Positions 385 through 60,122 of a stretch of 64,000 nucleotides of DNA are shown piece after piece. Numbering within the stretch: the stretch's first letter is position 1; each line of letters begins with the position of its first letter. The notes under the pieces are model-generated. The model was not told the origin of the DNA. It was given only the letters and a program-made list of their open reading frames with translations, and did no database searches. The stretch lies in sequence record PV029745.1; one strand, written 5' to 3'. The translations under genes were made by a program, and so were the position numbers.

Positions 385-1218
385 ATGCATCCTTTGGCAC
401 AATCTTCTTTTGGTGTCCAAAATTCTCCGCAGAATCAGGTACGTATTGGCTGCACTATGTTAGCTGGTACGGACAAAAAAGGAATTCTTGCGCCGAATGC
501 GGACGGTTATTATACTGTAGTTCTGGGTGCCTATGGTACACATAACTCTGCTGGTATGTTCTATGACGAAGCCAGTGGCGTTGCGATGTTTGATCCGAAC
601 TCTTCCCTGATGCGTCGCCTTAAGAAAGGTGTTCTCTTCATGGAGTTCAAACACCCTGAACCGTTTACAGACCTGATGATTGATGGTCGTGTTGTTCGTC
701 AACCGATGGATGATCGTCAATACCTGCAACGTATTCGTATGATCGACGATAACCGGGTTTGTGCACATATCCGTGCATTGACTATTGTTCCCGGTAAGAA
801 TGAAAATGGTAAGACTGTTAAAATGGTCGTCGGTGAGGTTAAACCTTACGGTCCGTTTGGTCACATTTTTAAAGAGTCTTTGGATAACCCAAGTATCAAT
901 ACCTATTGTTCCGTTCGTTCTATCACACAGGACGACGTAATGCGTGGTATTAAGTATACACGGGAAATCTCCACCTGGGACTTCGTCGGTGAGGGTGGTA
1001 TCTATATTGCTAACAAATATACCTCCCCTGCTTTGGAAAGTTTCTCTGATACCGAAGTTATCATCACACCTGCTACCCTTTGGAAGATGCAGGATGAAGC
1101 ACAGAAGCGTGCTAATATCGGTATGGAATCTGATCCTAATCTAGACGTTACTGATCTAATTCAACAACTAGGTTGGTCGCGTAAGAAGCCGATTCGTGTA
1201 CCTGCTTACATGCGATAA
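385..1218 (+). CDS. Prohead (head maturation) serine protease, phiKZ gp175 / T4 gp21-like
   Basis: Motifs MEFKHP (catalytic His), RIRMIDDNRVCAHI, VKPYGP, CSVRS (catalytic Ser) and ISTWDFV. Confidence 0.9.
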   Translation: MHPLAQSSFGVQNSPQNQVRIGCTMLAGTDKKGILAPNADGYYTVVLGAYGTHNSAGMFYDEASGVAMFDPNSSLMRRLKKGVLFMEFKHPEPFTDLMIDGRVVRQPMDDRQYLQRIRMIDDNRVCAHIRALTIVPGKNENGKTVKMVVGEVKPYGPFGHIFKESLDNPSINTYCSVRSITQDDVMRGIKYTREISTWDFVGEGGIYIANKYTSPALESFSDTEVIITPATLWKMQDEAQKRANIGMESDPNLDVTDLIQQLGWSRKKPIRVPAYMR

Positions 1219-45677: not shown

Positions 45678-46001
45678 TTACAAACGATCGTAAGCGTCGT
45701 TAAACACTTTCTCTATCGCTTTGAAGATATTCTCCTCAGCGTAGTTGTCTACCCGTTTAGGTGTCATGAACGAAGAGTTATTCGTTCCACCTTTAGCTTG
45801 TGCTTGCTGTGCCGGTAGCCAGTCAGGGACATTACCCAAACCAATATCTCTAGGCTCAAGTCCATGAACGTTACCTTTTTCAAGGATGTGTGCGTTCATA
45901 CGATCCCGAGCACTACGGAGTAGGTTGAGAATGATGTTATTAAACTGACCGATATTGCCTTTCAGCTTATCGAGTTCGACACGAAATACTGTCATAGCCA
46001 T
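45678..46001 (-). CDS. Stand-alone fibre repeat module (107 aa)
   Basis: AHILEKGNVHGLEPRDIGLGNVPDW...FMTP is a single copy of the repeat in the flanking fibres. Confidence 0.8.
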   Translation of the reverse strand: MAMTVFRVELDKLKGNIGQFNNIILNLLRSARDRMNAHILEKGNVHGLEPRDIGLGNVPDWLPAQQAQAKGGTNNSSFMTPKRVDNYAEENIFKAIEKVFNDAYDRL

Positions 46002-46012
46002 CTTAAGTCTCC

Positions 46013-48295
46013 TTAGGGTGCGACAATAGTCGTCCCATCATTCCAGATGAGAGCATTGGTCGGAGAATCACCCCAGAATTCGGTATAACCAAGATTGTTT
46101 ACTGTAACAGTGAAACCTTTACCAGCAGCCGCACTATAGAAAGGTGCTGACCCGTAAGGAATTTCTAACTGTCCATTCTCGTTGGAACCGAACATAGCGA
46201 TGTCTGTATCCATATTCTCAAGGCTAGATGGATCACGTCGAATCTGAACGGCGTGGTGTCCATAGTTACCAGAGATAGAACTCACATCGGTTAGGGTGTT
46301 TGCTTTGACCAAACGATTATCTTTCGCTGACCAAACATCGAGAGTAGAAGTGACTTCAGTCAATTTAAATGTAGGCGTATATGTAATCTCATACACACGG
46401 ATTCGACTAGCATTTCCATTAGTGGTATTACCACCTTGGAATACTAGATACTTGGAACCAATCCGGATATCGGAGATTTCCCAGCCGCCAGTCAATTGAG
46501 CAGCGATTACAGGCGTAGCAGCAGAAACCCAATCACTAGCACCTATTGCTGTATAAGTCGGGTCACCGGACGGTGGGGACTTTTCAACAATTGCCATTTG
46601 ACGAGAATCCGCTTCTTCGGTTGCTACCCACATTTCGGTTACATTGTCAGACTCGGCGTACAGTTGAGTTACTGTACCTCCGGCGATCTTCATGATCTTA
46701 CCTTCATCTGCACCGTCACTTGGTTTTAGTTGAACATATAGAGCAGTTTTAGAGCCCCACATAGCAACCATCGCATTTGCCTGGTTGAAGCCAGCACCAG
46801 CAGCCCAACCAGCAGGAATTGCTAGTTTAGCAGAACCGGCTGAACGGATACCATCGCCCTGTGACCAAGTACCGGACTGGAAGTCACGTATGGCTGGAAC
46901 TAGATGATAATCTGCATCCTGTAGGCTTAACCAAGACCAAGCTGCACCACGGATTGGAGTGATCGGATATGCATCGGCACCCGCTGGTTCAGAGCGATAA
47001 ACTGTATCACCCGAACCGTTGAATAACGCATATGCTGCTGCACCAGCGTGAACACCTTGAATCTTACTCAGACGTTCTTTATCTTGCTCGTCTGGAGGAG
47101 TCGGGTCATTGAAACTGATATCTGCCGAAGAAGCAATACCTTCTCCGATCTTCTCAGTCACTTCTGCCATGATGCCATTAATATCGCTGTTGAGCGGGAA
47201 CTTAGCTTCCCATTCCTCAGGAGTTTCCCCGCCAAAGGTAGTCGCATCACCACCACTTCCACCAGCCGCAATCTTCTGATCAATTTCCTGTTTGGTATAT
47301 GTACCAATTAGACCAGGAGTGATATTGTGCGGGTTAGTATCGGTAAGGTGTTTATTGAAGTCAATGATTAATTGATCAAGACGAGGATCACCTTGAACGG
47401 CTTGAATAAGCAGAGACACCGTATATGGAGTCATCAAGGTACTATTGTTAGTCGGATCAACAGCCTGTTGTGGTGTTGCAGCAGGATAGTTAGGAACGTT
47501 ACCCAGACCAATGTCACGCGGGACCATTCCATGAACGTTACCCGTGGCGGCAATGTGTGCATTAAGAGGCTTGAGTGCGTTTTCTTGGATGGACAACAGT
47601 ACACCACGAGGGTTCGTAAACAGGTCGTTACGATTACCATCTTTGTGCTGTTGGTCTGTTGCCATAGAGAAGTTAGGCACGTTACCAAGCTGAACCTGTA
47701 CCTTATTAACACGGTGCGGGTTATCGAAATCTCTTAAGTGCGACTCGGTTGTACCGGAAGCAGTTGCTTCCATGATATCGCCAAGACGTTGAAGAGAAGC
47801 ATTAATCTCTTCTGAACCCACTAGACTATCGATCGGTTGATCGTGATCGAGAGGTGGGAACGAGGCAGGGAGTACATCAATATTACCCCATGCACGAATC
47901 AGCGGGTTATACTGTCGACGAGACAGTTCCGCCAGAATAGCTTGGTCGCTAAAGCCCCACTGCCCACCGATGGTCCGATAGTCAAGACGTGCTTGACCGG
48001 CGATAGAGCGTTTCATGAAGCGAATAGAACCAGCAATCGGTCGACCAATAGAATCCATTGCTTCGATGAAACGGTGACCGATCATGTAATCGACACCCTC
48101 TACAAACAGAGCACCGGTCTGGTTGTTCCGTACTTTAAGAGAGTCGACAAAGAAAGGTGCCGCTTTCGGAATAATGAAATAGTAATCGGTAGGGCCGGGT
48201 ACTTGCAGGGTTTGGATTTCCCCTGTGATAAGGTTAGCTGGGTTAGTCCCATGCAAATCCTCGTCATATAGACCGGTTGTACTAACGGTGGACAT
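46013..48295 (-). CDS. Tail fibre/tip protein (phiKZ gp131-like) with a probable C-terminal beta-propeller
   Basis: YDEDLHGTNPAN N-domain; three NPH/NVH repeats; Gly/Trp-rich C-terminal half. Confidence 0.75.
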   Translation of the reverse strand: MSTVSTTGLYDEDLHGTNPANLITGEIQTLQVPGPTDYYFIIPKAAPFFVDSLKVRNNQTGALFVEGVDYMIGHRFIEAMDSIGRPIAGSIRFMKRSIAGQARLDYRTIGGQWGFSDQAILAELSRRQYNPLIRAWGNIDVLPASFPPLDHDQPIDSLVGSEEINASLQRLGDIMEATASGTTESHLRDFDNPHRVNKVQVQLGNVPNFSMATDQQHKDGNRNDLFTNPRGVLLSIQENALKPLNAHIAATGNVHGMVPRDIGLGNVPNYPAATPQQAVDPTNNSTLMTPYTVSLLIQAVQGDPRLDQLIIDFNKHLTDTNPHNITPGLIGTYTKQEIDQKIAAGGSGGDATTFGGETPEEWEAKFPLNSDINGIMAEVTEKIGEGIASSADISFNDPTPPDEQDKERLSKIQGVHAGAAAYALFNGSGDTVYRSEPAGADAYPITPIRGAAWSWLSLQDADYHLVPAIRDFQSGTWSQGDGIRSAGSAKLAIPAGWAAGAGFNQANAMVAMWGSKTALYVQLKPSDGADEGKIMKIAGGTVTQLYAESDNVTEMWVATEEADSRQMAIVEKSPPSGDPTYTAIGASDWVSAATPVIAAQLTGGWEISDIRIGSKYLVFQGGNTTNGNASRIRVYEITYTPTFKLTEVTSTLDVWSAKDNRLVKANTLTDVSSISGNYGHHAVQIRRDPSSLENMDTDIAMFGSNENGQLEIPYGSAPFYSAAAGKGFTVTVNNLGYTEFWGDSPTNALIWNDGTTIVAP

Positions 48296-48383
48296 CGCGC
48301 CCTCCTTTAAAGCGCTAGCGCGCGGTTGTTAGCGTAATGATGTGAAATTCACATAAGATTGTCCGATCTTTTCTAACGGAGAC

Positions 48384-49670
48384 ATGACAATGTACGTGCT
48401 TGTACGTTCTAGGTATCGCCCTAGTCGCCGAGGTGGTCGGTGGCAGGAAGCGGACTTTACAAATGAGCTAGTAACTACACTAGCTGCGAAGTATGGGGAT
48501 ATTTATCTCTACATCCAATATCCTGGCCAAGGTGAGCCTGTAACAAGAGCACTGCACTGGGTTAATGTTACTAACTGGCTAAACGATGTTGAACCAACTG
48601 TTACTGTTCAAGAGTGGTTAACCTCTTTAGGTAATAAAGCTCTACCTTTTGATGCAGAACTACCTAACGAAAAAATTCGTTTGGTAAAGTATGCTCAAGC
48701 ATGGCACTGTGGTTATAACTTTACCCCAGTTGCTCGTGGAGGCCATCCTTTAGATCAAGGGAGTGATTTCCATAAGGAAGATCTCCTTATGACTCATCCA
48801 AAACATCAGCCTTCAAAGATCAGAGATTATTCCATGATCTCTGTTAATGGTTATTTCCATTTATGTGACTATACCAGTGCTGGTGTAAGGATTATTGATG
48901 GAAATACGACGTTACGTAAATGTAACGATAACCAAATTGGTGTTTACAGTTTCGAAACTATTGGTAAGCTTACTTTTGTTCCTATTGTTGACAGTATGAT
49001 TAGCGGACTTAATCCCACTGCCCCTTTGTGGGATGGTACTTATCTAACCATGCCTGAGAATGTTGACATCGAGAATAAAACTGTATTGCTTGTTACTGGC
49101 GGTTATCTAAACGTTCTATCTAGTGTTTATAATCGTGTAGGCGAAAGAACATGGAGAGTTCAGTTTGGTAACATGATGTTTTTAGATCGTTATCTAGAGT
49201 CATACCACGCAATGGATCTCTCTTCTCTCGGATTAACATTCGATAAAGAGAACCCGACTCTATTCAATGTAGATGAACTCAAAAACAATGATGTTATCCG
49301 AAAGTATTTAACTCTTAGTCAGAGTTTCTTTGTAATCGTTGATTCCCAATCATTCTTCCAGGAATACGAAGCTGTAGAATATCTCAATCTACCTGGACGT
49401 TACTTCGATAACAAATACGATAGATCGCCTCTCGTTGGTGCGTATGGTAGGATGCTAGATTATCACACAATCAAAGAACCTCACCATGAAGGTATAATCC
49501 CTCAACATGAAAATATGTATGTCTACTGCGCTGTATTAAACCGTAGGAATTCCTATGATGCTAATACGCGAGCATGGCCTGAGCAAGAGATCGTTGATGG
49601 TGGACGTTATCCAGCTCATCCGTTTAGAGACGAGACAGCATATTATCGAATTTTAGGGGTTGAAGGTTAA
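48384..49670 (+). CDS. Virion structural protein (phiKZ gp130-like)
   Basis: ISVNGYFH and LLVTGGYL motifs; synteny between gp131-like and the portal. Confidence 0.65.
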   Translation: MTMYVLVRSRYRPSRRGGRWQEADFTNELVTTLAAKYGDIYLYIQYPGQGEPVTRALHWVNVTNWLNDVEPTVTVQEWLTSLGNKALPFDAELPNEKIRLVKYAQAWHCGYNFTPVARGGHPLDQGSDFHKEDLLMTHPKHQPSKIRDYSMISVNGYFHLCDYTSAGVRIIDGNTTLRKCNDNQIGVYSFETIGKLTFVPIVDSMISGLNPTAPLWDGTYLTMPENVDIENKTVLLVTGGYLNVLSSVYNRVGERTWRVQFGNMMFLDRYLESYHAMDLSSLGLTFDKENPTLFNVDELKNNDVIRKYLTLSQSFFVIVDSQSFFQEYEAVEYLNLPGRYFDNKYDRSPLVGAYGRMLDYHTIKEPHHEGIIPQHENMYVYCAVLNRRNSYDANTRAWPEQEIVDGGRYPAHPFRDETAYYRILGVEG

Positions 49671-49675
49671 AGCAA

Positions 49676-49706
49676 CATATTGCCCGGCTCAAGGCCGGGC
49701 TTTATG
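49676..49706. terminator. Bidirectional hairpin terminator, CATA..TATG family
   Basis: catatt-gcccggc-tcaag-gccgggc-tttatg. Confidence 0.85.
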
Positions 49707-49709
49707 TCG

Positions 49710-52406
49710 TTAACGGAAGTCAGATGTATCTTCTTCGTCTTCCAGTTCATCCTGTTCAGCGGCCGATATTGGATCTTCAAGACCCTCAACTTGCGGCTCA
49801 TCTTCGGGATTAGTTTCATCGGTATTTTCACTGGACGATTCATCCATGTCAGTGATATCACTATCACCAGCTGGAGTATCACCTGTACCACCATCAACAC
49901 CAAGGTCCGTATCAGAACCATCTAAATCAGAGAAGGAGTCATCTCCAGACTCGTCATTATTATCATTGTTCCAACTGTCACCACCACCTACATCATCAGC
50001 TCCATCGATAGTAGATTTATACTTAGCCTCAAGACGCTTCTTAGCTTCTTGTTGATGCTTAGCATAGCTAAGGATAGCAGAGCCAACAGTTTCCTGTTGT
50101 ACGTTCAGCCAATCCAGCAAGCTGAATGCAGGTTTATCACCATCCATTTCTGTAAGAACATTAAGTTCCGGAAGGATGTTGTGTGTTGCCATAAACTGAC
50201 GTTTAAATACAGCTTTCAACTGAACCATTATCTGGTCAGACAGACCAGGTATGGAAGTAAACTCATCGGGGAAGAGTTCGCTGGTGATGTAGTTTTCCAA
50301 GCCCATAGTCAGAAGTCGATCATAGGCATCCATCGATTCTGCTTGACGTTCATGTTGAGTATTATCGGGTGCCGGTAGAGAAACCTCAATGGCAGTGATA
50401 AACTCATCAACTACTTCTTCAACTGTCAACTGTTTAAGTTCAGGCGATGTCAACATGTCAACGTTGTCTTGAATGATTTTGTACATTTGATTACGCAGGA
50501 TAGAACTGTGCGTTACAAATACACGAATGAATTTAGACAAGTGTTGACAGAACGCTTTCTGTTTCTCTTTAACACGTCGAGACATTACAAGGTCATTCTG
50601 TACCACAGAAGTAGCGAAGTCTGGAGAAGACATCGGGTCTACTTTCTCAGGTGGTACACCCATACCCGAGATGTGCATACGGCGAAGGCGATCTTGTAGA
50701 TCAGGATTCCCAGTATTAACGTTGGTATTGTAATCGTCGTATTGCACCTTTGTCTCTGCGTAGTCAGCACCATTGGTGTTGATTTCAAAGTCAAAGCCAG
50801 AACGAATCAGATGGTCCATCGCTTGCGTAGGGTCAGGGGCAGCCAGAGGGAAACTACGGTGCGCCGATTCCATGATATTCGATTGGATATTACTGATTGT
50901 TTGTTCCGGATCTGTATCGTCGGGATCAAGAGTAATACTTACACGCTTACGACCAACAGCATTACGCATACCCCCAATAGCTTCTGCCATAAGAAGAGTA
51001 GAACGCATGGTTGCGATAATCTTCGAGCGAGACAGAAGAGTTTCACCAATGCCATTTTCGTTATAGTCGAATGCAATATAAACTAAAAGCTCTGCCGGGA
51101 TGAATACCAGTTGAGTATGTTTAGCTTTCCAAGAACGATACAACATGATCCTCTGAATTTCTTCAGTTAGACCGATCTCAATTTCCTGATCATACATGCC
51201 GTTACGAAGACGGTTGTTAAGATCATTCACAATAATCGCGTTGTATGTTTGCTGGATTTCATCCACTTCGAAATCTTGTTTAGAAGTATTAGCACCCATC
51301 GCTTCCCGAGTAAGGCGTAGAACTTCAGAACTGTTGTCGTTATTCTTACCACCTTTCCAACCTGATTGAAGCTCACCATAAAAATCTCGGGTTGAGTCTT
51401 TGGAGAGCGGGTAACCATGTTGGTCGACCAACAAGAAATAGCCGATGTGTTCATGTGGGCGCCCCTGTACGAATACTGGTACAATGGATTCCATTGGAAG
51501 AGGGAGAGTCAATGGATGTCCAACCGAAGGCCGATTCATGTACTTAGGAGCTGTGATTACCTGAGTATGTTCAGTGCCACCTAGTCTATTCTGATAAAGC
51601 TGTTCGATTTCAGCGTTACCGAATTTATGAACAGCGTTTTCCATCGAGATCTGGTTACCGCGAAGCTTACGCGCAATATTCATTTCGCGTACACGTTGTG
51701 ACATCGATGGAACTTTGAGAATGTTAAAGTTATCCGTTACAGTGAGGAGCTTATCTCCACGAATACGGTTAGCTGTAGCATTATCATGATATCCCTCAAG
51801 AGAGATATTGTTCTTATCTGGGTGACCAAGGAAACCCAAGTTTTCATTAGTTGTATTCTGGACACGATCTCTAATAGAGGAGAAAGTTTCCATAGATACC
51901 TGGCGACGCCCATTAATAAGGTTATCTAGAACGTTTTCAGGGAGAACAGCTAAGATGGAAGCACCCTTACGGAACAAGCAATCCCGAAGGATCAGGTCCA
52001 GACGCTCGTCAATCTTATAGTCTCGTTTAAAGTACGTTTCAACTGGCTCAAGCAAAAGCTTTGCAATCTCGCTATCAAAGATAGCTGGATCAATAGCGAA
52101 TGTGAGGTCCGTATCCGAAAGTGCTTTAGGATCGATGATACTACCGACGTATACTGTTTCTACCAACTCTAGGTCTGGTAGCAACTGCATAATAGAGTCG
52201 GAGTCAACGATCTCTTGCGAAGTATCACGCGAAACCTTATCTAATGTGAAACGGTTTACGTTCACACGAGGCTTTGCTGCTTCGCTGCCAATTGCGTTCG
52301 GGTCCTTACGCAACAGGTTGAGGAGGGCGTTAGTCGGAGTTGCTTTCGATCCTAAACGGAGCGTCTGCAACTTTGGGTACGCTACCTCATTCGTTTGTCG
52401 AGCCAT
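49710..52406 (-). CDS. Portal protein (phiKZ gp129-like); start moved to MARQTN
   Basis: ~900 aa; LLPDLELVETVYVGSIIDP, GYFLLVDQHG and VPPEKVD; long acidic C-terminal tail; RBS aggag. The portal call rests on recalled family resemblance and synteny. Confidence 0.75.
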   Translation of the reverse strand: MARQTNEVAYPKLQTLRLGSKATPTNALLNLLRKDPNAIGSEAAKPRVNVNRFTLDKVSRDTSQEIVDSDSIMQLLPDLELVETVYVGSIIDPKALSDTDLTFAIDPAIFDSEIAKLLLEPVETYFKRDYKIDERLDLILRDCLFRKGASILAVLPENVLDNLINGRRQVSMETFSSIRDRVQNTTNENLGFLGHPDKNNISLEGYHDNATANRIRGDKLLTVTDNFNILKVPSMSQRVREMNIARKLRGNQISMENAVHKFGNAEIEQLYQNRLGGTEHTQVITAPKYMNRPSVGHPLTLPLPMESIVPVFVQGRPHEHIGYFLLVDQHGYPLSKDSTRDFYGELQSGWKGGKNNDNSSEVLRLTREAMGANTSKQDFEVDEIQQTYNAIIVNDLNNRLRNGMYDQEIEIGLTEEIQRIMLYRSWKAKHTQLVFIPAELLVYIAFDYNENGIGETLLSRSKIIATMRSTLLMAEAIGGMRNAVGRKRVSITLDPDDTDPEQTISNIQSNIMESAHRSFPLAAPDPTQAMDHLIRSGFDFEINTNGADYAETKVQYDDYNTNVNTGNPDLQDRLRRMHISGMGVPPEKVDPMSSPDFATSVVQNDLVMSRRVKEKQKAFCQHLSKFIRVFVTHSSILRNQMYKIIQDNVDMLTSPELKQLTVEEVVDEFITAIEVSLPAPDNTQHERQAESMDAYDRLLTMGLENYITSELFPDEFTSIPGLSDQIMVQLKAVFKRQFMATHNILPELNVLTEMDGDKPAFSLLDWLNVQQETVGSAILSYAKHQQEAKKRLEAKYKSTIDGADDVGGGDSWNNDNNDESGDDSFSDLDGSDTDLGVDGGTGDTPAGDSDITDMDESSSENTDETNPEDEPQVEGLEDPISAAEQDELEDEEDTSDFR

Positions 52407-55941: not shown

Positions 55942-55975
55942 CATATCGCCCTCTCCCGAAGGAGAGGGCTTTATG
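55942..55975. terminator. Bidirectional hairpin terminator, CATA..TATG family
   Basis: catatc-gccctctcc-cgaa-ggagagggc-tttatg; same stem as the 1231 and 6741 copies. Confidence 0.85.
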
Positions 55976-55982
55976 TTGTTAC

Positions 55983-56255
55983 TCATCGCTGTTCAATCGA
56001 CCATACTCTATCGATCTCTTTCATCTCGATCATTCGTAGAGTAGCCCCAAATACAACGACAATACACAACAGCATTGTAATTGAAGTAAGGGACATCTTA
56101 ATGAAATCACGTTTGCCAATCTTTTCAAATGGCACGTAGATGAGATACCTAAACCGATGATTTAGATAAAGAGCAAAGAAAGCAGCGAGAACAGCTATCA
56201 GGAACCACATGTGAAATTCCTGAGTCCACGTCAATACATAACCGAAGACAGACAT
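55983..56255 (-). CDS. Small membrane protein with two predicted TMs
   Basis: MWFLIAVLAAFFALYL and MSLTSITMLLCIVVVFGATL. Confidence 0.75.
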   Translation of the reverse strand: MSVFGYVLTWTQEFHMWFLIAVLAAFFALYLNHRFRYLIYVPFEKIGKRDFIKMSLTSITMLLCIVVVFGATLRMIEMKEIDRVWSIEQR

Positions 56256-56960
56256 TTACACCATCGCCACAAAAGTGCCATCTTTAAAGCCAACTTTACG
56301 TTTAGCTTCATCGTACCATACATCAACACCCATGCGAGCCAGGCCTTCTACGACATATTTATCATAGTTACCTTTACCACGCATAATGGATTTCAGTTGA
56401 CGAGTCAGGATGGTGTGGTTAGTGGAAAGGAACATACCTGGTACGTCAAGGTCTTTAACACGGAGATTACGCGGTAGCAGCGACTCCATGGAAATGTTCA
56501 GTAGCTCCATGCGACGGAGATCTTCACGCAGAGCCCGAACATTATAAACCATGGCCAGTCTGATGTCACCACCTTTACGGAGATGTTCCTCGGTCAGATG
56601 TGGCAGAGTTGCGGTTGGATCAACAATCACTGCTCTTTCACCAGAACTTTGCACGACTGGATCGAGGTAAGGGTTATGTACAACATATTCCCCATTAACC
56701 CAACGATACAAATCCAAAGTAGAAGTTACTTTGTAAGTTGCCTCAGGATCACCCCGCAAAGGAAGATCATCGACAGTAAGGACATCAATAGACATACTCT
56801 CTCCTTTGCCTTTAGGGAGTTCAGTTGGACTATAACTGCTAGCGTCCATTATGGTTTCAAAGAAATCCATATCATGTTCTACATCACGAATTGCCTTACC
56901 GAACACTTCACGATGAGACGGAATGAACATGGATTTTACAGCGTTGAAAACCTGATTCAT
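56256..56960 (-). CDS. Hypothetical protein containing one fibre-type globular repeat
   Basis: VLTVDDLPLRGDPEATYKVTSTLDLYRWVNGEYV resembles the repeats of 28698..32021; RBS aagga. Confidence 0.7.
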   Translation of the reverse strand: MNQVFNAVKSMFIPSHREVFGKAIRDVEHDMDFFETIMDASSYSPTELPKGKGESMSIDVLTVDDLPLRGDPEATYKVTSTLDLYRWVNGEYVVHNPYLDPVVQSSGERAVIVDPTATLPHLTEEHLRKGGDIRLAMVYNVRALREDLRRMELLNISMESLLPRNLRVKDLDVPGMFLSTNHTILTRQLKSIMRGKGNYDKYVVEGLARMGVDVWYDEAKRKVGFKDGTFVAMV

Positions 56961-57001
56961 TTTGCAATTTCCTTTTGATAGAGTGTATTTATATCACCTC
57001 T

Positions 57002-57009
57002 GTGATATA
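57002..57009 (-). promoter_or_regulatory. Possible early promoter variant TATATCAC
   Basis: One mismatch to TATATTAC; part of the inverted repeat atatcac-ctct-gtgatat; upstream of the 56960 start. Confidence 0.45.
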
Positions 57010-57013
57010 GGCG

Positions 57014-57553
57014 TTATTTATCTTTAAATACAGGATTATCGAAATCATCTTCATAGAGGATATCGATACCTACAATATCAACCACCTGCTCATTGTCATT
57101 CAGTTGATATCTAAACCCAACTGTAAGAGGAAGCAGATTATAAAGGGCATTCAGATCACGGGCCAAGGGACCTGTTGCGGTAACATCCAAAATCAATACA
57201 TGTGGTGTATTGATGGTGTTACTATATTGAATGGACCAACTATCAATAGTAGCACATACACGATTTGCATCTACTACTAGAGAACGAAGAATAATATTCT
57301 CAAGTGAAGATACTTTTACTTGGGGATGACCTAATTCGATTCCTGTCAACAGGAGTTCATTCTTCTTAACAAAAGAAGAATTCTCCCACAGGTGAAGTTG
57401 ACTCAAACCAAATGCATTTTCAACGATTGCTTCTACTCGTTCTTCACCGAGTACAGCAAGATCCCGGCGAATACCAGCGACCATACGTTGGCGCATTTCA
57501 TCGAAGGAAACGGTTACCCGATATTTGGCATTCGGTAGTTTTTCGAATTTCAT
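57014..57553 (-). CDS. Prohead-protease-like paralogue lacking the catalytic Ser
   Basis: IELGHP, RSLVVDANRVCATI, VTATGP, VGFRY and DIVGIDIL align to the gp175-like motifs at 385..1218. Confidence 0.7.
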   Translation of the reverse strand: MKFEKLPNAKYRVTVSFDEMRQRMVAGIRRDLAVLGEERVEAIVENAFGLSQLHLWENSSFVKKNELLLTGIELGHPQVKVSSLENIILRSLVVDANRVCATIDSWSIQYSNTINTPHVLILDVTATGPLARDLNALYNLLPLTVGFRYQLNDNEQVVDIVGIDILYEDDFDNPVFKDK

Positions 57554-57572
57554 TACTCTGCTCCTAGAGGGA

Positions 57573-57599
57573 CATATAGCCCCTCATTAGAGGGGCTAG
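57573..57599. terminator. Hairpin terminator
   Basis: cata-tagcccctc-atta-gaggggcta. Confidence 0.8.
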
Positions 57600-57602
57600 T
57601 TA

Positions 57603-58013
57603 TCAATCTGACAATATGTCGAATGTGATAATTTCTTTCAATACACCAGCCGCATTCTTGAGGCCGCGTACACCAAGTCGCATTGGAATATCGTTCTTGA
57701 TCATCGCATGCATCCGATCATGATTGGGCCCGAATGGACGGATGTATACGTTGAAGCCAATGAGTTTAGCTTTCTCATGTACAGGATCGATACCGAGTAC
57801 TAAAGCTGCACCATTATTGCAGTTGATGGATGTTGCTCGTTTGTAGTCTGTTTCAATGTTACCTGTCATCTTAGGATGACCAAACTCACAAGCGATCACG
57901 CCGGAACGAATATCATTACTAAACTTACTGACTTCATAATTCACATGCATGTATTTTGGAAGTCGATCTAAAGCAATGAATTCTACGCCTACTCCATTTT
58001 CAAATGATAACAT
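57603..58013 (-). CDS. Prohead-protease-like paralogue lacking the catalytic Ser (minimal domain)
   Basis: CEFGHP, RATSINCNN, IRPFGP, LGVRG, EIITFDIL. Confidence 0.75.
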   Translation of the reverse strand: MLSFENGVGVEFIALDRLPKYMHVNYEVSKFSNDIRSGVIACEFGHPKMTGNIETDYKRATSINCNNGAALVLGIDPVHEKAKLIGFNVYIRPFGPNHDRMHAMIKNDIPMRLGVRGLKNAAGVLKEIITFDILSD

Positions 58014-58032
58014 CTCATTTTCCTATGAAAAG

Positions 58033-58057
58033 GTCCCTCCGAAGAGGGACACTTATG
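58033..58057. terminator. Hairpin terminator
   Basis: gtccctc-cgaa-gagggac-acttatg; cUUCGg on the minus strand; closes the nvRNAP operon. Confidence 0.8.
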
Positions 58058-58058
58058 T

Positions 58059-60122
58059 TTACTTCAGGCGCTTCAACAGAACCGCTTTCTCGGTCAGACG
58101 TCCACGAATAACTTCCATGTAAACGCCATCAACGGTGATCAACCGCATACGGACATTAGCAAGGCCAGATGCCGTAGCACGAGTGATCATACCTTTCAGC
58201 ACTTCACGAACAGTCGGGTGAGTTCCTTCAGAAACAAGGACGGCTTTCTCGGTCAGAACGTTCAGAGTGGTCATCTGTTCAAGAGTCCAACCTACCTGGA
58301 AGTTAACGTACTGATCGGCAACACCACGGATATCATCAACCTCAGCCATCGTTACCGAACGAGCGATAATTTGAGCTGCACACGCTTTGATGATTTGCAG
58401 TACTTGCACACCTTTCTTGTTACTGATGTAATCCAGCAGATCACCGATGTCATGTGCGAAATCACTGATGGTGATATTTTGGATCGACAGGCTATCTGCC
58501 ATGAAGTCATTGATGGAATCGGTCAGACGATCATTCAGGAAACGGAAATAGCGGATGCTCAGTTGACCGCGATTTACCATTTCTTTCAGTTCGGTAGCAA
58601 TCCCGATCAGATCGGTATAGTTACGCAGATTACTCAGCTGCTCGAAGGTTTCATCGCTAACATCCATGTGATAGATGCTCATCGATTTATATTCGTGTGC
58701 AGGCAGAGTGATCGACTGCGATTCTTCGTCGTCGCCAATGTTCAGGAGTTCCCGAACAGCAGCACGTGCTTCAGATTCGTTTTCGAGATCGTTAGCACCC
58801 ATGAACATCTTGTTATCAAGAATGATCGGACGCATTGCCGCTGCTTCACCGAGTTCATTATCCTTGACGAGGCTTTCTACTTCTTCAATACCCATTGCAT
58901 CTCCACCGATAGTAGAGATGGGAGTGGTGGAAGCATATACCACACCGTTAGGACGATATTCACGACGACGCAGGTCATCATTCAGTTCGTGTTTCAGGTA
59001 TTCCATTTGCGGGTTCCATTCAATGAATTTCTCTTTTACTACACCATCGGGGAACTTGACGAAGAAACGGCAATAGTGTTCCGGATCAACCAGAGGACTG
59101 TACGGATCTTCATCACCAACGGTCCGTTCCCAATCAACCAGTTGTGCCGGTTTAATCAGAATTCCCCCAGGGTTATGAATCTCATCGTAAGGACGAGCGA
59201 TGTTTACACGGAAACCAGTAGGTTGGTAATACATCGGATCGATCATCACCTGAGATACGTCGATCGGAACAGGGAGATCAGTATCTTCCACAACGGGTGT
59301 ATTTTGCACTTGCGGTTGTTGACTGTACATCGGTTGTTGCTCCTGTTGATGGGAGTAGCCACCGTAAATATCAGTACTGATCTCTTCCTTCGGCATCAGG
59401 GGAGCAGATGCAGCCGGAGTATCATCGTAATACGAACTGGTGGTGCTCGATACCGTGTTTGGCGCTGCGCCATAAGTACCAGCGGGTTGAGAGAAAGTAG
59501 CTTGGGTGGTTGTTGCGAACTGTCCCATGTTACCTGGGTTAATGGGAGGCAAATTACCTGCCATCTGGATACCTTGCGGTTGACCCATCATTCCCATTTG
59601 CTGTTGTTGGGGACGATAGTTACCAGATTTGTACGCTTGAATCTCTTGGAGGATCTGCTGATACATGGCTTGAGCAGTTTGCAGACCTTGGAACATATGT
59701 TGCGGAACTGCACCCATTTGCACGAGAGCAGGATACGATGCAACGCATTGACCAAGGAACGCTTCATACATACGCTGTGCAGCTTTCGGCGGAGCATCCG
59801 TCTGACTGTAGTTCTTGCAGACACACAGGAACTCAACGAAATCCACCAGGTGCTGACACCATTGTTGGAAGATCTGGTTTTGGAACCAGTTCGACGACAG
59901 CAGGTTGTACGCGAAAATATGAAGGTTGCTTTTTCCAACCGACGATTGCGCAAGCCCACGGAACAGACCAATAGCCATGAGCACCAGCTGTTGGTTATTC
60001 ATCAGGTTCTGGCTGAGTTGGAGTTGAGGTACCCGGTCATTGCCATGAGGCAGATTACCATTAAAGGTACTCTGATCGACTTGTTGGCAGGATACCGGGA
60101 GTTGAGCTTGTTGGTTGTACAT
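58059..60122 (-). CDS. Conserved hypothetical protein (phiKZ gp124-like) with a Gln/Pro/Met-rich disordered linker
   Basis: Helical N-domain; QQQQMGMMGQPQG...QQEQQPMYSQQPQ region; strongly biased codon usage. Confidence 0.7.
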   Translation of the reverse strand: MYNQQAQLPVSCQQVDQSTFNGNLPHGNDRVPQLQLSQNLMNNQQLVLMAIGLFRGLAQSSVGKSNLHIFAYNLLSSNWFQNQIFQQWCQHLVDFVEFLCVCKNYSQTDAPPKAAQRMYEAFLGQCVASYPALVQMGAVPQHMFQGLQTAQAMYQQILQEIQAYKSGNYRPQQQQMGMMGQPQGIQMAGNLPPINPGNMGQFATTTQATFSQPAGTYGAAPNTVSSTTSSYYDDTPAASAPLMPKEEISTDIYGGYSHQQEQQPMYSQQPQVQNTPVVEDTDLPVPIDVSQVMIDPMYYQPTGFRVNIARPYDEIHNPGGILIKPAQLVDWERTVGDEDPYSPLVDPEHYCRFFVKFPDGVVKEKFIEWNPQMEYLKHELNDDLRRREYRPNGVVYASTTPISTIGGDAMGIEEVESLVKDNELGEAAAMRPIILDNKMFMGANDLENESEARAAVRELLNIGDDEESQSITLPAHEYKSMSIYHMDVSDETFEQLSNLRNYTDLIGIATELKEMVNRGQLSIRYFRFLNDRLTDSINDFMADSLSIQNITISDFAHDIGDLLDYISNKKGVQVLQIIKACAAQIIARSVTMAEVDDIRGVADQYVNFQVGWTLEQMTTLNVLTEKAVLVSEGTHPTVREVLKGMITRATASGLANVRMRLITVDGVYMEVIRGRLTEKAVLLKRLK

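Follow-up and report, generated by a model that had tools for sequence, protein, structure and literature searches.

Two predicted pseudo-proteases related to the S80 prohead protease are encoded among the head genes of a phiKZ-like Pseudomonas jumbo phage

Two adjacent genes of a phiKZ-like phage, here called A and B, appear to encode anciently duplicated, selectively maintained paralogues of the phage's own S80 prohead protease, which would keep the core fold and the surroundings of the active site and have neither the serine nucleophile nor the C-terminal region. Both belong to a protein family known since 2017 and are not an undescribed system. Their function is best approached tentatively; the reading preferred here, which we hold at rather less than even chances, is that they are non-catalytic paralogues acting outside the capsid, where they would bind Glu-ending cleavage motifs and compete with stray protease.

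The window examined in this study is a stretch of 64,000 nucleotides from sequence record PV029745, the genome of Pseudomonas phage phiHQ, which is placed in the Chimalliviridae by its record. This phage and its relatives are phiKZ-like jumbo phages of P. aeruginosa with genomes of roughly 300 kb. Positions 56900..58100 are 100% identical to phiHQ, 99% identical to the phages BRkr, phiLBG22 and HHBS36_1, and 79% identical to PA1C and PS119XW. Genus labels conflict among near relatives, with phiHQ (PV029745) labelled Phikzvirus and HPP-Temi (PP968062) labelled Pawinskivirus. Two tandem intact minus-strand reading frames were confirmed as predicted, pseudo-protease B at 57603..58013 (136 aa) and pseudo-protease A at 57014..57553 (179 aa), and the ribosome-binding sites claimed for them were also found, a Shine-Dalgarno-like AGGA/AGGAG lying 7 nt before the ATG of each gene. 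The pair is located among head genes, between homologues of phiKZ gp124 (58059..60122, minus strand, PHROG 15010) on the upstream side and phiKZ gp125 (56256..56960, minus strand, PHROG 14839) on the downstream side, and downstream of the genes for the major capsid protein and a non-virion RNA polymerase subunit. The true prohead protease (385..1218, plus strand, 277 aa) is encoded about 56 kb away within the window.

The protein encoded at 385..1218 is a full member of Pfam Peptidase_S80 (E 4.8e-97). A and B scored 16.7 and 21.0 bits respectively against Pfam PF20034, below its curated cut-off of 23.4 bits, and both matched PHROG 7478, 'head maturation protease' (A 2.7e-10, B 5.8e-5). Pairwise BLASTP similarities among A, B and the protease were weak (E 0.003-0.025), and A and B have diverged from each other as predicted, sharing only 22% identity. 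Because the BLASTP results were marginal, homology was tested with profiles. In hhalign, a profile of 15 paralogue sequences aligned with a profile of 28 S80 proteases over 137 columns with a probability of 98.3% (E 1.6e-14), and this alignment reproduced all five of the ordered motif pairings with the true protease that had been proposed in the original prediction. On these profile comparisons A and B are homologous to the core of the S80 protease, beyond chance.

A HMMER scan of 1.84 billion proteins with the paralogue profile recovered 254 proteins at E <= 0.001, some of them short (about 115-195 aa) and others full-length proteases that were matched at residues ~55-180. An HMM built from 101 short members in turn recognized the window protease (8.8e-28), the SPN3US protease gp245 (6.5e-20) and SPN3US gp117 (4.2e-22). 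A word-indexed protein search with B as the sole query returned only PA1C-type copies, and an alignment query together with the full HMMER scan was needed to reach the wider family. When the whole phiHQ genome was scanned piecewise with both HMMs, exactly three members of the superfamily were found, namely the protease, A and B. Ten short relatives that were checked by cluster were all metagenomic. For two metagenomic members, P0133 (136 aa) and P0149 (179 aa), the longest contig given is in each case a 6028-bp ENA contig, and the two might represent another B/A pair, more remote from the one in the window.

For SPN3US gp245 the reported catalytic triad is H77, S153 and D178, and self-cleavage is lost when S153 is mutated to Ala (PMC5694885, PMC7411985). 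These residues align to H90, S176 and D199 of the window protease. Both hhalign and MAFFT supported the earlier reading of A and B as proteins that keep the catalytic His and carry Gly at the Ser position, and the Asp proved to be kept too; in B the corresponding residues are His46, Gly114 and Asp132. From these alignments A and B are predicted to be unable to use the canonical nucleophile. Retention of His and Asp in both proteins would be compatible with proteolysis by way of another nucleophile, but this is very improbable, given that every allele of both genes has Gly in place of the Ser, that no Ser or Cys aligns with that position in A or B, and that the His has also gone from most members of the family.

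The C-terminal tail of the protease was likewise found to be missing, the alignment stopping at about residue 203 of 277, and the homologous core corresponds to protease residues ~32-203. After the Asp the chain continues for only four residues in B and 15 in A; since both proteins stop soon after the Asp strand, the C-terminal part of the enzyme, of about 75 residues, is missing. According to an inference of Ali et al. (PMC5694885), the protease is directed into the prohead by this part, which is then cut off, and A and B, which are without it, would for this reason remain outside the prohead. A combines a B-like core with an N-terminal helical insertion (residues ~17-66) and an acidic C-terminal end modelled with low confidence. 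In comparison with the S80 enzymes phiKZ gp175 and SPN3US gp245, A and B have in common with them the positions of a Glu, a Pro, two Arg, a Gly-Pro pair and an Asp, whereas the Ser nucleophile and the C-terminal region are absent and the N-terminus is shortened.

The same pattern extends through the family. Residues were counted in a MAFFT alignment of the 101 short members, hmmalign to the protease HMM having left many C-terminal halves unaligned. The His is kept in 25 of the 101 and the Ser also in 25, the other members having mostly Gly (38), Ala (12) or Lys (12) at the latter position, and the complete His-Ser-Asp triad occurs in only five. Seven other positions are conserved almost throughout, namely Glu43 (101 of 101), Pro47 (100), Arg59 (97), Gly95 (100), Pro96 (90), Arg116 (99) and Asp132 (99). 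A and B both carry all of these Glu, Pro, Arg, Gly-Pro, Arg and Asp residues, which are present in 89-100% of the 101 members. Six of the seven positions are invariant in the 28 true proteases and the Gly position is near-invariant there. These counts indicate that selection acts on the residues around the active site and does not act on catalysis. Judged by its residues, the family as a whole is a pseudo-enzyme family in which the active-site surroundings are preserved and catalysis is not, although a minority, for example the Ser-keeping members, might still be active.

What these conserved surroundings are for is open to more than one interpretation. The conserved Glu, Arg and Asp may only hold the fold together and not form a pocket, and the protease fold may have been re-used for a non-proteolytic task, such as that of an adaptor or a structural module, with the conserved residues serving folding only. 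This is a rather unlikely possibility. It fits with the free replacement of the catalytic His and Ser across the family, and the literature searched, which covered PhiPA3 gp142 and gp143, 201phi2-1 gp206 and gp210, and SPN3US gp117, holds no functional, expression or virion data beyond the study of Ali et al. (2017). The seven conserved positions, however, flank the catalytic sites and nearly all are invariant in the proteases, which is suggestively more than a generic core needs.

The predicted structures are compatible with a protease-like fold. The AlphaFold2 models of B (pLDDT 89.9, pTM 0.83) and A (pLDDT 82.0, pTM 0.76) are confident and have the same beta core. Searched against BFVD, the B model matched both short paralogues and annotated prohead serine proteases with E-values of 1e-7 to 1e-4 and TM scores of 0.6-0.7, and the A model gave similar E-values with TM scores of 0.4-0.6. 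The short-paralogue matches came from Phabio (three), 201phi2-1 (two), Psa21, and Erwinia, Yersinia and Klebsiella phages. Matches annotated as prohead core serine protease or T4 prohead protease had E-values of 1e-4 to 1e-5, with TM scores of 0.6-0.7 for B and 0.4-0.5 for A. Foldseek against the PDB returned nothing below E 0.49 for B and no solved structure resembling the models, and no relative in the PDB was recovered with sequence profiles built from either the proteases or the paralogues. The support for the fold is therefore drawn from predicted structures. S80 has been linked to T4 gp21 in the literature. The predicted models of A and B resemble gp21 (Peptidase_S77) at the level of the fold, through the BFVD matches labelled as T4-type, but there is no significant profile match (probability 0.8%) and no PDB match by fold or by sequence.

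Some of the BFVD matches are labelled 'prohead core scaffold', and this label, together with the location of the genes in the head-gene block, would suit a role for A and B as transient core or scaffold-like components of the prohead that are degraded or expelled at maturation. Such a transient role is also compatible with absence from virion lists; 201phi2-1 gp206 and gp210 and PhiPA3 gp142 and gp143 carry no virion-protein note, which neighbouring genes do have. A role of this kind is nevertheless quite unlikely. A and B are without the C-terminal region that has been linked to prohead incorporation, the alignment of orthologues, as read here, has no conserved cleavage-type motif close to the N-terminus, phiKZ has nothing at the same site, and T4 gp68, a suspected precedent, shows no relation to gp21 or to the A/B family.

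The gp68 protein is a small non-essential component of the T4 prohead core (141 aa) whose gene adjoins the protease gene in T4, and it was considered as a possible non-catalytic short paralogue of gp21. The loci of T4 and of six T4-like phages were surveyed by BLASTP, Pfam and profile-profile comparison of gp68 and gp21 profiles. The gp68 protein showed no similarity to gp21, nor to the paralogues, and the candidate was rejected; gp68 is like A and B in size only.

The original prediction had presented the two genes as a candidate undescribed system. This does not stand, as Ali et al. (2017; PMC5694885) described a family named 'diverged paralogue of the prohead protease', with SPN3US gp117, 201phi2-1 gp206 (145 aa) and PhiPA3 gp143 (136 aa) among its members; PHROG 7478 holds the family, and such genes are already labelled 'head maturation protease' in some deposited and Pharokka-type annotations. 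Those authors also noted two copies in some Erwinia phages and the absence of an equivalent of the 3' end of the protease gene (PMC5694885). By tblastn, B is the orthologue of PhiPA3 gp143 (43% identity, E 8e-25) and A that of the adjacent PhiPA3 gp142 (29% identity, E 2e-11). Like the published family members, A and B are short, consist of the core only, are without the C-terminal region and are encoded apart from the protease. There are differences as well, since gp117 was reported with Ser and Asp and no aligned His, whereas A and B have His and Asp and no Ser. Ali et al. did not list members of the gp142 (A) type, nor did they report triad loss across the family, purifying selection or allele replacement. 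The new facts added by this study are the family-wide loss of the triad with conserved surroundings and an island of divergence from PA1C, and both are modest.

The occurrence of these genes varies among relatives. PhiPA3 carries gp142 and gp143 at the same site in the order opposite to that of the window, 201phi2-1 has gp206 at the site and gp210 three genes further on, and Phabio has gp193 there. At the same site in phiKZ there is no family member, only a gap of 80 nt, and in Psa21 the site holds small genes that are unrelated by sequence. The SPN3US gp117 gene is located elsewhere, within a long array of small unknown genes and away from the head genes. Copy number in relatives is two to three. 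The empty phiKZ site, the number of copies, the inverted order in PhiPA3 and the small-gene array of SPN3US are all consistent with accessory behaviour, and by their distribution A and B behave as exchangeable accessory genes.

Several other features of these loci were recorded. In PhiPA3, gp141 is encoded on the opposite strand between gp142/gp143 and the gp124 homologue (locus segment 4477-5411). In 201phi2-1 gp210 (locus segment 5322-5699) His, Ser and Asp are all present, and Phabio gp193 (locus segment 3409-3822) has Cys, Ser and Asp. The paralogue of Phabio is adjoined by the small gene gp192 (locus segment 2979-3398), which has a weak Pfam match (E 2.8e-4, below the cut-off) to the phiKZ major capsid protein in its C-terminal part. 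Truncated head-gene copies may accumulate at this site.

Both A and B are under strong purifying selection. In comparison with the PA1C and HPP-Temi orthologues, dN/dS was 0.06-0.07 for B and 0.08-0.10 for A; dS exceeds 1 and is partly saturated, but the ratios are still clearly far below 1. Together with the protease-like predicted fold and the missing nucleophile, these values bear out the earlier description of A and B as retained pseudo-proteases. Loss of function by decay, in which the two genes would be mere leftovers of duplication, is the least likely of the explanations considered. Nothing beyond the loss of the catalytic Ser speaks for it, and the low dN/dS, the reading frames that are intact in all eight Pawinskivirus-type records (8/8), the orthologues in PhiPA3 and the 254 relatives at E <= 0.001 all argue against it. 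Residual activity and decay are thus both regarded as unlikely.

The window and PA1C are nearly identical, with a median identity of 99.6% in 500-bp bins over the 64 kb, and only two islands fall below 93%, one at 46-52 kb (85-92%) and the other at 56.5-58.5 kb (75-91%). The first of these (46000-52000) corresponds by synteny to the homologues of phiKZ gp129 (portal) to gp131. The second is gap-free over 56300..58300 (70-89% nucleotide identity), has flanks that are 98-100% identical, and reaches its lowest identity over A and B, which at 70-82% are the most diverged stretch of the window. A total of 22 residues of B (16%) and 43 residues of A (24%) differ from PA1C, and with HPP-Temi added the numbers of variable sites are 24 and 53. 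Most of the variable sites are in loops and helices; in B, variable sites make up 20 of the 78 positions outside strands and four of the 58 within them. Synonymous divergence is also high, dS being about 1.5 in A and B compared with 0.08 in the gp124 homologue, and for this reason the divergence points to a foreign allele imported by recombination rather than to local positive selection. An imported allele of this type can be neutral.

The divergence bears on the question of whether the two proteins act on the protease itself. By way of the core fold that they share with it, A and/or B might pair with the phage's own protease, and either hold it inactive or set its timing until it is incorporated into the prohead. 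The core fold is predicted to be the same in A, B and the protease, T4 gp21 has been described as pentameric (PMC9958956), which makes core-core contacts plausible, and the genes are located among head genes with a candidate late-promoter TATG before A. Such pairing is rather unlikely all the same, because the window phage and PA1C have the same protease, residue for residue (277/277, 100%), and yet A and B differ at 24% and 16% of their residues; furthermore, the phiKZ site is empty and the SPN3US copy is found away from the head genes.

The preferred reading, that A and B bind cleavage motifs outside the capsid, would involve binding and not cutting. The most likely ligand would be the short Glu-ending cleavage motif that is recognized by the real protease, since the conserved residues flank the catalytic site, and among them the two near-invariant Arg might contact the Glu found before each cleavage site. 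The absence of a virion-protein note for 201phi2-1 gp206 and gp210 and for PhiPA3 gp142 and gp143 agrees with a location outside the capsid. Motifs occupied in this manner would be less within reach of free protease in the cytoplasm. The targets protected might be head precursors of the phage, host proteins, or both. The three roles put forward in the original prediction, namely a decoy against host sensors, a poison of the protease oligomer and a shield of cleavage sites, are likewise candidate roles only.

A role facing the host is conceivable because prohead proteases activate CBASS by cleaving the loops of CD-NTases (PMC12991175); the statement in the original prediction that protease activity triggers CBASS was thus confirmed as real background. 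The divergence island, the variable copy number and the absence of the genes at the phiKZ site lean indirectly towards an accessory or host-facing role, and the replacement of alleles beside an unchanged protease leans towards a host-facing one. A specific counter-defence function, in which A and B would occupy, and leave uncut, the protease-sensitive activation loops of host immune sensors such as the CD-NTases of CBASS and so hide the activity of the protease, is nonetheless unlikely. If it were true, the frequent replacement of alleles would represent matching to different host sensors.

As some bacterial immune systems were recently shown to detect prohead protease activity, look-alikes of the protease that are widespread, unable to cut, conserved around the active site and swapped between near-identical phages are a natural candidate for governing the place and time at which such activity becomes visible. 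With a purely morphogenetic role, A and B would still be a clear case of a pseudoenzyme family in viruses.

The transcription signals around the pair were also surveyed. It had been predicted that A and B each form their own terminator-bounded unit, which is plausible from the hairpins present. These do flank both genes as predicted, but only one of them looks canonical, namely the terminator-like structure after the gp124 homologue (58033..58050, minus strand), which is GC-rich and has a loop of four bases together with a U-rich tail. Its position is conserved in six phages of different genera (the window phage, PA1C, HPP-Temi, PhiPA3, 201phi2-1 and Phabio). Between B and A there is a GC-rich hairpin with no U tract (57577..57598, minus strand, -20.5 kcal/mol), and after A there is a weak AT-rich hairpin (56990..57009, minus strand, -7.8 kcal/mol, z -1.6) that is conserved in PA1C and HPP-Temi. 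A scan of the region for sigma-70 promoters gave a count equal to the shuffle expectation; such a scan has no bearing on a phage transcribed by RNA polymerases of its own.

Directly after the B/A hairpin is a TATG (57573..57576, minus strand) with its G 20 nt before the A of the ATG of gene A. TATG is the late-promoter motif of phiKZ, and its G is the start of transcription (PMC4666361). The TATG before A is conserved in PA1C and HPP-Temi, and the same arrangement of hairpin and TATG precedes 201phi2-1 gp206, which weakly suggests a candidate late promoter, the motif being just 4 nt long.

A 15-nt string upstream of the gp125 homologue (56995-57009, minus strand) recurs upstream of 201phi2-1 gp206 with one base changed; a 13-mer of this string, with two mismatches allowed, was not enriched in the window (six matches compared with 3.2 expected). 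After the gp125 homologue there is a hydrophobic reading frame of 90 aa (55983-56255, minus strand) that is shorter in PA1C and absent in HPP-Temi, and near it a two-way terminator-like hairpin was found at 55948-55969.
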